Positions 1,698 to 63,852 of a stretch of 64,000 nucleotides of DNA are shown piece after piece (the first letter of the stretch is position 1; the number at the start of each line of letters is the position of its first letter). The notes beneath the pieces are model-generated. The model did no database searches. It was given only the letters and a program-made list of their open reading frames with translations, and was not told the DNA's origin. Origin of the DNA: Bispira polyomma (taxonomy: Eukaryota); the NCBI GenBank assembly GCA_965649765.1, contig OZ287749.1:22630001-22694000 (forward strand), in the 5' to 3' direction. Made by a program: the position numbers and the translations under genes.

Positions 1698-1807
1698 TCA
1701 ACATGACTTCTTCCTTTTCAGTGCCCTTCTAGATTCATAGCAAATCCTATTGACCTCCTCTGTAAACATGGTGGGTTTCATCATAGGAAAGCGTGAAAAC
1801 ATATAAC
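1698..1807 (-). CDS. Alternative last exon 1 (BEN C-terminal segment)
   Basis: gtttttctttcag|GT then YMFSRFPMMKPTMFTEEVNRICYESRRALKRKKSC*. Confidence 0.85.
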
Positions 1808-2088
1808 CTGAAAGAAAAACAAACAATAGTTTAATAAGGACCATCGAACCCAAGGTCGGATTATATTTATTATACACCTCTCTCAGTTTATTTAATATAT
1901 TTTATTTATGAATAAATATAACCAATTTTTATGGTCCCAAAGCTTTAAAATGAGGTACAAGCAGAAATAATTGCTGTGCATACAGGAGATTGGACTTATA
2001 TACAGTCTACTGTACTTATGAGTAAGGCATAAGACTAACAACACAAAAGAAGTAACTCATTTCTGCTTACACAACACAGAGATATATC

Positions 2089-2207
2089 CTATTCTTTCTC
2101 TTTTTGACTTCTTCTTTGTAATAGTCTCCTACAATCCATGGATACTTGGGCAATAACAGAGGTAATAGTAGACGGCTTTAAAGTTGGGCATCTGCACAGA
2201 ACATAAG
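2089..2207 (-). CDS. Alternative last exon 2
   Basis: gtgttttcag|CT then YVLCRCPTLKPSTITSVIAQVSMDCRRLLQRRSQKEKE*. Confidence 0.82.
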
Positions 2208-3789
2208 CTGAAAACACAGGCAAATTGAACTGTTTAGCAAGATCATACTTCATTAAGGGATACTTGAAGATATAAAACTGTTCACGACCAACAAATATCA
2301 CACACCATTTAATCACCTTTTTTGATATTCCTAATTTGACAAAGTCATTTTACAGAGAAAAACTATTGTGTAGTACGGTATTTCAAATATATCAAGATAA
2401 ATGATAAAACACTTATTATACATGAAACGTGAATGCCGTTATAACAAAAATGATAGTATCCTTTTAGAGAGGCACTTGAGAGTATTTGCCTCAATTTGTT
2501 AAAAGAGTTTTATTTTCACCATTCATACTGTAATAATTTCTGGTAGTCCACCTTCAGCACTGGTTTCTTCCACCATAAAATCTGGCCATCGTGATATGAC
2601 TAACAAGTTCCTATTGCAAGAAACTGAAGGAGAATACAATAATATTTGGGGGGTATCGACTGCTTGCCAACAGACATAGGTTATTGAATTAAGATATGCC
2701 TTTGGCTGCCAGCTGACAACCTACTGAACCCAGGTGTTAAAAGTGTTAAGCTGTTGAAAGTAACGTAAACCAGGCTAAATTCAAATTCCATAACAAGGTC
2801 TAAAACTCAAGTCACATATGATAGCAAAATTACATTGATGATATGGAGCAGGAGACAACTACTAACCTTTTATATACTTCTAACAATCTTACATTGGACA
2901 GTGAGCCGTAATTCATTCAGTCTTAACCCAACAATTCACTGACCCGATTGACACAAGATACATCTTGACGTGTGGCTAGATTTTACACTGTCCTGTAATT
3001 AAAACTACTGTCCCTGGGCCGTCAGGCCTCTGATATTTCCCTCTGGAGAACGGTTTTACTTGATGCCCACATGCCCACATGTTTGAAGTTGGCGAGATCC
3101 TAATGCTGCACAGCTACCCTATATATCATATGGTTTGCAACTGGGGCAAATATGAGGCTCTTGCCATTGATAGTTATTTTGATATTACCCTTCCCCTACG
3201 AGATTCCAAGAAGTATCAGTGATCCTTTCACAAGAAAATCTGCTTAACTGGTACTTTTGCCCCAAGAGGGTTAAACACTAATAGATTTCACACCTGCAGC
3301 TTATAAGGTCAACAATTGTGTTAAAACAAACACTGCTAATTATAGTTTCTGAGATACTATGGCAACTCCTTACTTTTGAGACTAAAGGTCCATCCGTATC
3401 CGAATAACTATTTGAAAATGGATTTTGTTTTCTTCAATTTACACAGGACAGAAAATCCGGCCGAATAATGGGCACAGAATGAGTCTTTATGTGTTTACAT
3501 ATGTGAAATTTTAAGCTACTTTACAGGTCCTTAGTAAGGATCTGGATCTGTCAAAAATTAGAAATTAAATCTGTGTAAATTTTATCCGGGCCAGATCAGC
3601 GGATCCGTCTTCTACGCGTCTGCTTCCATTGTTTTATTTGTTTTAAAAAGATACAGATCTGCGATCCGGATCCGGCCTGTGTGTCCAACATTACAATCCA
3701 TCAAAAATAATGTGTGTAGAGTAGGACTAATGTAGAGACATCTGTTGAGACAGTCCTTGTACCATTGTAACGACACATCAGAAAATTAT

Positions 3790-4396
3790 TATTTACTATT
3801 ATTAAGAATTTTTAACACGCCTTATTGATGCTAGGCATCTTCTAAAGCGCAACAGCAGAATCATTGGTCCAATCATTAAGTCCATAGACATTGCAAAGTC
3901 GTAAGGAAGGAAGTGGGAGCGTGCACGAGGGAAGCTAAGGTGGGTAGGCAACATTAGAAAGATAGGTTTTAAGCTTTTTCCTAAAACCGATAAGTGTGTC
4001 AAATGATCTGAGGTCGACTGGGAGACTGTTCCATAACCGCGGAGCTGCAGTGGAGAACGCTCTGAATCCCGCCTTCCCGATTGGTCTGACCGAAGTGACG
4101 GAGAGTCTGTTGCCTCTCTTGCGGTTACTGAAGGAAAGAAGGGAGGCAAGGTAGGAGGGCTGTTGAGTGACTACAGCCTTAAAAGTAGTAACGTGAATCT
4201 TGAACAAAATGCGAGAATGAATGGGCAGCCAGCGTAATTTTTTGAGGTAAGGAGTGACGTCTGTGCACCAACCCAGGCGAAAAATGACCCTACATAGGCA
4301 GTTCCGGATGGACTGGAGCTTTTTAATATGTGACTTATTATAGAAAATGCTTAAGTGGCTCCAATTGACTACAAATTTCAAGGCTAATGCCACCAC
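3790..4396 (-). mobile_element. 5'-truncated LINE (L2/CR1 group): ORF2 C-terminus plus 3' UTR
   Basis: ORF 3935-4396 contains KLQSIRN..., VTPYLKKLRWLPIHSRILFK and GFRAFSTAAPRLWNSLP...FRKKLKTYL, typical of the post-RT region of L2/CR1-type ORF2; TAA-rich tail. Confidence 0.85.
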
Positions 4397-61719: not shown

Positions 61720-61900
61720 ACTGGCTTTCCTTCAGTAATCGTAAAAGGGAAAAAATAAAAAGAGACTTTCCGTTTCTGTGTTAAACCGAGCAAAAGGGCT
61801 GGATCTAAAGCTTTCTCTACAGCTGCCCCTGTGTTATTGAATAGTCTCCTTCTTGAGCTCAGATCACTTAAAACCTATCTCCTTATTAATTATCGTCAAC
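61720..61900 (+). mobile_element. Degraded L2/CR1-like LINE 3' fragment (co-duplicated at ~63240-63420)
   Basis: Translates as GSKAFSTAAPVLLNSLLLELRSLKTYL (copy: GSRTFFIAAHMLWNSLPVEL), matching the LINE at 3935-4396. Confidence 0.65.
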
Positions 61901-62892
61901 ACTAAACCAATTTTACATCAATAAAGTGCTGATGCGTACCTAAACTCAACTATTTTTTGTGTTTTCCAGTATAACTACCAATTTAAGTGTAAGATGATTA
62001 TTTTTTGTTTTTCACAGTATACCTTTAAATTTAAGTGCAAGATGAACATTGATGAAAGTTACAATTTTATCTAATTATTTATATTTATCCTACTTATATT
62101 TTGCTTTGGCGACAAGCCGTCAAATGTGCTTCGGAGCGCACACTAGAATTCAGCCAATAGAGAGTAAAACATATATGATAGAGTTGCAAAGCCTGGACTC
62201 GATGCATTGCTATATTTGTCAGAGTCGACCGATGCATTGATATCTCGACTGATCATCGCAGCTTTGTTGATCATTATACACATACATTCATACTTAAATG
62301 TGTGGGTGCTTTATATTGATATTTTACAGGTTCTGTCAATTTTAACCCTGATAAAAGTACATCGCCAGTAAATCTCCATTCACATCATGTACATTCTTAT
62401 GTTTAATAAGCTGCAAGCTGCTATCCGAGAAGCGATAGCTTGTATCCAACATTTACATTTCGCAGTACTATCCAATTTTATAGTCTGCTTAGCCTGAAGT
62501 ATTAAATTGCTTATTTGAGCTATCACCTTATTGCATAAAAATACCAAGTTTTACTTTCAATGTGGTAAACTTGTAGTCTTGTAAGATATAGACACTGGGC
62601 ACAAGAACCTTAAACTTGGATACTAAAACTAAAACTCAAAGATTTTATCTGCACAATATTGTATTCTAGACATTAAAACACAATAATACACCTGAGACAC
62701 CATTTCTAACAATCTAAGAAATTCCCTTAATTTGATAAATGTAGTAACATTTCTTTTTTTTATAATCTTCTCAGAAATATTCTGCGTACTGGTTTTTCTC
62801 TGTATTGGTTATCAACAAGTCTTACTGTTGCTGAGTACAACACATATCAATTTATTGGGCGGTATTTTAGACCAATATGGTATATCCTAGGA

Positions 62893-63017
62893 TTATTGTT
62901 TACTAGCAGGCGGCAATTCTCCGCGACGTCTCAAGCGTTCTTTTTGACCATGACATACTTTAGTGATGATCTGTACTATCTCAGGCATAGGCATCCAATA
63001 TCTCCGCTGAGTGAATT
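62893..63017 (-). CDS. Alternative last exon 45 (recent duplicate of exon 44)
   Basis: tatattttttag|AA then FTQRRYWMPMPEIVQIITKVCHGQKERLRRRGELPPASKQ*. Confidence 0.83.
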
Positions 63018-63727
63018 CTAAAAAATATAAAATGGAAACCTCCATTACCAGAAACCGGCATTCTGTTGGGTATTTTGTTCCACTACAATATTTATACTTC
63101 GATAGATTTTGAAGAAACTAAGAGAGAAAGATTTGGTCATAAATTTAAGTGACAATAAAAGTCACATCTGGTGCTTCCAGCTGGTATATATATATGCTAT
63201 ACTGAGACATCAACTTATATCCGCACTTTCTTACTAATCATTATACTGCCTTTCCTTCAGTGACCTCAAAAAGGGGAAAAAGAGACTTTGTTTCCTTTGT
63301 TGAACCTAACAAGAGAGCTGGATCTAGAACTTTCTTTATAGCTGCCCATATGTTATGGAATAGTCTTCCTGTTGAGCTTATATCACTTAAAACATATCTC
63401 TTCATTAGAATTCGTCAACACCGAACAGACAATAGCAATAACCTTAATGTTAGACACTAAACCTCAAAGATTTTATCTGCAAACTATTGTATTCCAGACA
63501 TTAGAACACCACACATACTTCATAAAATCGAAGACACCACATCACCACTTCTTAATCTTGGCAATGGTATGTGTATTTCTTGGGGAGCCTAAAACTTTGC
63601 ACTGTCTCGCGTGTACAGACTAGCAGTAGAATCTCTTCAAAAGACTGAAATAAAACCTACTGATGACCCAACCAAAAATGCATGCCTCTGGTCTCTTGAG
63701 TATGTTTGGATCAATCTAATGTAGTCT

Positions 63728-63852
63728 TTAACTGTTCGATATTGGGTTAAAAGTCCCTTTCTGGCGTAGAAATCTTCTCAAGCCTCTACAGACATGGTTG
63801 ATGTAATATGTGGTGTCACTGCCCTTCATTGAGAAGCGCTGGTATGCATAGT
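63728..63852 (-). CDS. Alternative last exon 46
   Basis: ctttattttacag|AC then YAYQRFSMKGSDTTYYINHVCRGLRRFLRQKGTFNPISNS*. Confidence 0.85.

Follow-up and report, generated by a model that had tools for sequence, protein, structure and literature searches.

About 70 alternative last exons probably complete the BEN domain of a single gene in Bispira polyomma

The window analyzed here is the 64,000-nucleotide stretch of Bispira polyomma contig OZ287749.1 at positions 22630001-22694000 (window number + 22630000 = genome position; G+C = 33%). It holds 47 homologous exons in tandem on the minus strand (1698-63852), detected with an iterated, protein-only profile. We propose that these exons belong to one gene which makes a family of BEN-domain DNA-binding proteins through the choice of its last exon. 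Three constant exons would encode the common part of the protein: at the N-terminus a domain of a helix and a hairpin, then a linker, and last the BEN scaffold as far as the middle of helix α4. One phase-1 donor would then join them to one of ~70 tandemly duplicated terminal exons, and each terminal exon would finish α4 and add its own major-groove helix, α5. The isoforms would have in common the fold, the backbone clamp (α2), and the minor-groove loop, and would differ most likely in the bases that α5 reads. We consider this gene model and mechanism, taken as a whole, highly probable, and the gene is probably able to make about 70 regulators with different targets.

The original prediction, drawn from the window, had described exons that begin with two nucleotides of a split codon and had interpreted them as the exchangeable ends of a BEN fold cut by an intron. 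The observation was confirmed, and the interpretation as a whole is supported by the results below.

Constant exons and the donor

The donor was found 23.5 kb outside the window on the same strand by a genome-wide BEN search (partial match, profile 1-45). It is a phase-1 donor with a final G (GTC ATA AAA G|GTGGGC), and other GTs come no closer than 10 nt on the upstream and 13 nt on the downstream side. The coding parts of the constant exons E1, E2, and E3 (121+665+205 nt) add up to 330 codons and one base, and this base is G. E3 covered only positions 1-45 of 76 of the Pfam BEN domain (PF10523), with 24 bits against a curated cut-off of 23.2. It is the sole BEN first-half exon on that strand genome-wide; the other copy (78% identical) lies in a paralogue on the plus strand. 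A single phase-1 donor, probably ending in G, and an upstream exon with an incomplete BEN domain had both been predicted, and both were found. None of the outcomes named beforehand as contrary (a donor of phase 0 or 2, a donor ending in T, a complete BEN domain upstream) occurred.

The last base of the donor also accounts for the residues at the junction. With G, the split codon gives E in 33, A in 16, G in 9, D in 4, and V in 4 exons, and the next residue is Y or F in 53/66, so that the junction reads V-I-K + E/A/G/D/V + Y/F and the helix expected from a G-ending donor is rebuilt. The stop-codon argument used earlier in favor of G held only in part. A donor ending in T would make stops in 19/47 window exons and in 34/66 exons of the array read, which excludes T, but A and C give no stops either, and G was not singled out. 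This argument is limited further because exons in general end in G more often than in any other base, and in one relative the homologous donor ends in C (AAA C|GTGAGT, L024:440-470). Among homologous genomic fragments, 25 show Gly after the last constant residue, as expected from G|GT. In protein clusters from other samples (15 clusters), the constant BEN exon (L003:4096-4299) was 83-100% identical, and the linker exon 34-87%.

The variable exons and their acceptors

Exons are numbered from the donor, so the window contains nos. 20-66, and nos. 1-19 lie on its donor side. The array read so far comprises 66 variable exons (65 intact), and about 5 more were located further downstream by extra profile matches (E 1e-4 to 0.4) at OZ287749.1:22606579-22625333, up to 23 kb past the downstream window end. 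The plus strand of the window gave no significant match to the variable-exon profile, and a genome-wide profile search gave matches nowhere outside the array and the paralogue. A Pfam search of single variable exons gave no match. Each exon showed the same anatomy: a phase-1 acceptor, the remainder of BEN α4, a loop, the recognition helix α5, a short basic tail (a few to about 55 residues after α5), and a stop. In the window 46/47 exons were open, with 32-80 codons before the stop. All of them begin with 2 nt ahead of the first full codon, and the 15 dinucleotide types reported earlier were all recovered exactly in the 47 exons (AA 13, AG 5, CC 5, CT 4, CA 3, GG 3; AC, AT, GC, GT, and TT 2 each; TA, GA, TC, and CG 1 each).

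The acceptors were in register with the encoded protein. Counted from the conserved Cys position, 62/65 intact exons have an AG whose end lies at −62 or −65 nt (background AG 5.6%), and a zone free of AG extends from −76 to −69 on the same scale. T was found at acceptor position −6 in 65/66 and at −5 in 64/66 exons, and the motif TTNYAG is nearly invariant. A pyrimidine/YAG score, which was ad hoc and devised after the sites had been seen, chose the phase-1 AG in 65/65 exons, while all AGs of the same windows split 98/63/51 by phase. The acceptor register is not due to chance. A donor-like site between α5 and the stop was present in 3/65 exons only and never in register. As every exon stops and lacks an in-register donor, these are last exons and not cassettes.

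Mean identity among the exon cores within the species was 27%. Neighboring exons were more alike (37% vs 26% identical; permutation p 0.002), which fits tandem duplication. A tree of the exon cores (36 columns) resolved orthologue pairs and local clusters only. The in-frame TGA of exon 49 had identical letters in three DNA runs. This stop, together with a decayed remnant at 28497-28600, indicates birth and death inside the array.

Position of the junction in the BEN fold

The predicted gene HELRODRAFT_183479 (T1FJQ8) of the leech Helobdella robusta was the sole natural full-length relative obtained from a large search. It shares the N-terminal domain and contains a full BEN domain (Pfam 1-73/76, 36 bits). 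Its intron interrupts the same codon in phase 1 (AAA G|GT ... AG|CA TTT), and another intron precedes the BEN exon. Within 10 kb downstream a single terminal exon was found, and the leech last exon matched the variable-exon profile (hhalign 96%, E 1.7e-9).

We used the natural leech protein for structure modelling, with first-half exons only as alignment rows. The model of the BEN region had a predicted local distance difference test (pLDDT) value of 87.7 and showed the BEN fold, a β hairpin and five helices with a long C-terminal α5. Its template modelling (TM) scores were 0.77 with NACC1 (8yzs) and 0.78 with Insv (4ix7); with Bsg25A (4x0g) included the range was 0.73-0.78. The last helices span residues 67-80 and 86-110, and the junction corresponds to residue 75. 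The model thereby places the cut inside α4, in agreement with the earlier suggestion that the exchange point lies within the fold, between a constant scaffold and variable terminal helices. In solved BEN-DNA complexes α5 is the sole helix in the major groove, while contacts to the backbone, and in some cases to the minor groove, come from α2 and the α3-α4 loop (PMC11472053). As the modelled junction lies inside α4 and only α5 enters the major groove, the clamp and loop are predicted to belong to the constant part, and the whole recognition helix α5 to the variable exon.

Comparison with a second species and selection

A contig from the European Nucleotide Archive (ENA) was walked in a second species. 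The compared part covers exons 1-29 of our array (20-29 in the window); exons 30-66 lie outside it. In the second species the donor was the same, and 28 exons, each in phase 1, followed in almost unchanged order. There were 24 reciprocal best pairs with 61-88% identity and few gains or losses on each side. Among window exons 20-29 (56695-63852), seven had reciprocal best orthologues that were 64-85% identical, including exon 20 (63728-63852; 76%). On the upstream side of the pyrimidine tract, ungapped nucleotide identity dropped to about 30%. The starting dinucleotide changed between the species in seven cases, of which six were AA/AG changes that are silent for the split codon. Over the 24 pairs the synonymous divergence (dS) was 0.67, the nonsynonymous divergence (dN) 0.17, and dN/dS 0.26. 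The variable exons compared are under purifying selection, as judged from these sequences.

Residues of α5 were mapped on NACC1, where Arg468 makes a backbone contact and its mutation leaves <5% binding (PMC11472053). At this position 60 exons have R and the other 5 have K (65/65 R/K), and the basic end of α5 is kept in all exons. The base-reading positions 462, 465, and 469 showed entropies of 3.7, 3.4, and 3.7 bits, with 60 different triplets in 65 exons. Orthologues retained the residue at 462 in 21/24, at 465 in 20/24, and at 469 in 14/24 pairs. Together the three positions were retained in 55/72 cases, compared with 91/168 (54%) at equally variable positions (Fisher p 0.0014). This pattern, high diversity between exons and retention between orthologues, is as expected if each exon had its own maintained specificity, and it points indirectly to isoforms that bind different DNA sequences.

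Intronic inverted repeat and N-terminal domain

In 32 kb compared with the second species, conserved non-coding sequence was found only at the start of the intron behind the donor and in a block 3.2 kb downstream. These two places are the arms of a perfect inverted repeat of 19 bp. In the second species the repeat is 21 bp long with arms 4.7 kb apart. In Bispira polyomma the arm sequence occurs exactly twice in 1.03 Gb, up to one mismatch, and a transposon end was rejected as its origin on this ground. The palindromic core of the repeat might represent a DNA site.

The N-terminal domain has ~57 residues, and its model shows one helix and a β hairpin. No Pfam match was found in E1 or E2, so a BTB domain is absent. 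Comparison with the PDB gave no convincing fold (best Z 4.8, none at Z 5 or more). The domain has at least 11 matches in this genome (12 places), all on OZ287749.1. In other animals it stands ahead of BEN, FLYWCH (P0052), homeodomain (P0062), or probably C2H2 ends, some of them annotated with many isoforms; similar models are found in mollusc C2H2 clusters under the titles 'isoform X9' and 'isoform X25'. The domain may have a BTB-like role in assembly.

Weighing of alternative explanations

Splicing of the variable exons to this donor is suggested by the matching phase, the acceptors, and the leech intron, and several results weigh against it or against parts of the mechanism. No spliced constant-variable junction was found among database proteins of this or close species, and the sequencing runs compared are DNA, with introns evenly covered on 33000-38900. 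The leech intron is known from a gene prediction. The alignment behind the NACC1 mapping is 25% identical (E 0.002). At position 469 taken singly, conservation does not exceed background (14/24), and the excess at 462/465 could in part be due to helix packing. Downstream of the stops AATAAA showed no enrichment (median 388 nt vs 422 by chance), and 13 gaps contain neither AATAAA nor ATTAAA, which does not favor a separate 3′ end for each exon; for these reasons neighboring exons may share 3′ ends. Searches for spliced homologues otherwise returned genomic fragments running past the donor, with the leech protein as the only full-length match, and the JGI metagenomes contained only distant first-half exons on short contigs and no array.

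The same proteins could be made by trans-splicing as in mod(mdg4), with donor transcripts that end in the 8.5-kb intron and variable exons that are transcribed from their own promoters. How one donor selects among about 70 strong acceptors across 110 kb is a splicing puzzle, since in cis up to about 70 of them would have to be bypassed. Moreover, trans-splicing applies to all mRNAs of mod(mdg4) (PMC13490949), and the conserved, unique intronic repeat could pair within or between transcripts. Against this, all exons are collinear with the donor, and the parts read of both species contain no inverted exon. The repeat arms, identical in both species, showed no covariation or compensatory change, and no selector-like conserved copies were found before individual exons. 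With all exons downstream on the same strand, cis-splicing suffices and trans-splicing is unneeded; joining in cis appears more likely, and we regard the trans route as doubtful. A separate question is what the isoforms would do. The variable helix might tune protein partners, oligomerization, or affinity instead of base preference, as BEND3 BD1 binds PICH and some BEN domains thus bind protein (PMC8887127), and the tails after α5 differ between exons. The retention of the Arg468 equivalent and of the basic α5 end everywhere, and the high variation at positions where NACC1 reads bases, make this explanation unlikely.

Two further explanations concern the exons themselves. If most of them were silent duplication debris and only the first one or few were used, the exon with a stop and the remnant would be easily understood. 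However, 65/66 exons are open through α5 despite 27% mean identity, and the low dN/dS largely refutes this idea for exons 1-29, so we consider it very improbable. The exons might also be independent micro-genes or be brought to the donor by DNA rearrangement. Nothing speaks directly for either possibility. Every exon begins at a canonical acceptor that matches the donor phase and the position of the leech intron, and a shared start codon is absent; the DNA runs had no joints at exon edges over 5.9 kb. Both variants are hardly credible. Beyond the proposed gene model, we can tentatively imagine a recognition-helix repertoire, i.e., about 70 specificities on one scaffold, each under separate selection. 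A mechanism not yet described, possibly trans-splicing via the intronic repeat, would select the exon in each cell type or in each cell. The N-terminal domain would pair the isoforms and let their specificities combine, and the locus would be a lophotrochozoan counterpart to the BTB loci of insects. This complete version is speculative and less likely than not.

Comparison with known systems

The locus is similar to Drosophila mod(mdg4), which joins a constant N-terminal region to one of many tandemly duplicated 3′ exons for putative DNA binding. At least 31 isoforms of mod(mdg4) are known, and 41 in Plutella (PMC4667647); its C isoform carries a BEN domain (PMC4281564). It differs in having an N-terminal BTB domain, some exons on the other strand, and trans joining. 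Its splice sites lie outside BTB and FLYWCH (PMC4667647), in line with the earlier contrast that mod(mdg4) largely exchanges whole modules. In our locus the cut is inside BEN, BTB is absent, and all of about 70 exons are collinear.

Drosophila lola, broad, and fruitless likewise combine a common N-terminus with alternative C-terminal DNA-binding ends. In these genes, which have BTB and C2H2 domains, whole fingers are exchanged. Lola has 20 isoforms, 17 of them with zinc fingers (PMC9440207). The arrangement of the mod(mdg4)/lola type, in which a single donor follows shared 5′ exons and precedes an array of 3′ exons, was seen in the genomic anatomy of this species and, for the part covered, of the second. 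The locus is therefore mod(mdg4)/lola-like in its working, yet not a member of that group, as it has no BTB and its variable exon lacks a whole DNA-binding module.

FoxP is the closest precedent for a cut inside the domain. It combines a constant half of the forkhead with a duplicated exon for the second half, used as alternative last exons in Drosophila (PMC3002244). FoxP has two alternatives that are 60% identical, compared with about 70 at 27% in a BEN domain here. Large arrays of half-domain exons at a specificity surface also encode Ig2 and Ig3 of Dscam1, an adhesion receptor, where they are internal and mutually exclusive. The exon arrays that swap half a domain are alike, whereas here they are the last exons of a DNA-binding protein, and every exon reaches a stop. 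A docking and selector arrangement of the Dscam type was not seen either: the conserved element behind the donor has a single perfect complement, 3.2 kb inside the intron, and no conserved copies precede the exons.

The leech gene has the same domains and donor and differs by the single terminal exon found. A phase-1 intron in the same α4 codon is present in that gene and indicated in other animals. NACC1, BANP, BEND3, Insv, and Bsg25A have the same fold (TM 0.57-0.78) with aligned α5 residues, and no array of alternative α5 exons is known for them or was found in our literature search. In a literature search that covered few subscription journals, we found no BEN gene with alternative last exons and no description of this locus. 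What appears to be new is the lineage, the use of the BEN fold, the isolation of its recognition helix, and how many alternatives there are. If our explanation is true, this set of splice-made DNA-binding isoforms is larger than the 31-41 of mod(mdg4), of independent origin, and based on a different domain. It would provide a natural controlled experiment, in which the scaffold is fixed, the α4 end and α5 vary, and the base-reading code of BEN is directly testable. Automatic annotation would give one isoform and overlook the others.

Coordinates and minor features

Coordinates of the gene, its variable exons, and associated elements (window numbering, continued beyond the window end; variable exons 66-20 given from stop to acceptor)
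Feature	Position	Strand	Remark
Exons 66-61	1698-1807, 2089-2207, 6666-6790, 10343-10473, 12383-12582, 15518-15639	−	
Exons 60-55	17260-17381, 18951-19060, 20833-20954, 22568-22704, 24207-24379, 25730-25854	−	
Exons 54-50	26709-26836, 28793-28920, 32253-32353, 33092-33255, 34890-35008	−	
Exon 49 (broken)	36689-36699	−	TGA in frame at codon 3; helix-like frame runs on to 36593
Exons 48-43	37114-37223, 38296-38540, 39365-39474, 42257-42378, 42638-42756, 43744-43874	−	
Exons 42-37	44051-44172, 45033-45160, 45625-45740, 45941-46059, 46538-46668, 49220-49341	−	
Exons 36-30	50430-50551, 50665-50801, 51742-51866, 52510-52616, 53017-53123, 53744-53856, 54120-54262	−	
Exons 29-25	56695-56798, 57787-57911, 58632-58774, 58923-59032, 59578-59702	−	
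Exons 24-20	60490-60602, 60961-61091, 61345-61496, 62893-63017, 63728-63852	−	
Recent duplicates, exons 53/54	26709-28920	−	cores 90% identical
Decayed remnant like exon 52	28497-28600	−	between near-identical exons 53 and 54
Recent duplicates, exons 21/22	61345-63017	−	cores 90% identical; single copy in the second species
Variable exons 1-19	64743-78997	−	first one 8.5 kb downstream of donor
Inverted-repeat arms	84203-84221 and 87415-87433 (genome 22714203-22714221, 22717415-22717433)		intron; perfect 19 bp, 3.2 kb apart
Constant exon E3	87495-87699	−	205 nt; donor at 87495
Constant exon E2	87973-88637	−	665 nt
Constant exon E1 from ATG	88872-88992	−	121 nt
Head-to-head paralogue	about 99550-121349 (genome 22729550-22751349)	+	own BEN first-half exon, G-ending donor, 3-4 variable exons

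The same N-terminal domain also occurs at a third gene start, on the plus strand of OZ287749.1 from about 22761430. Inside the window, fragments at 3805-4399 (minus strand) and near 63206-63457 (plus strand) resemble the end of the reverse transcriptase frame of a non-long-terminal-repeat (non-LTR) retroelement, and the piece at 63.2-63.4 kb is repeated genome-wide. A ~66-nt tandem repeat at 25913-26254 gives rise to a repetitive open frame on the minus strand. High-copy interspersed repeats occupy 33985-34378 and 35167-35363, where the DNA runs showed very high depth.

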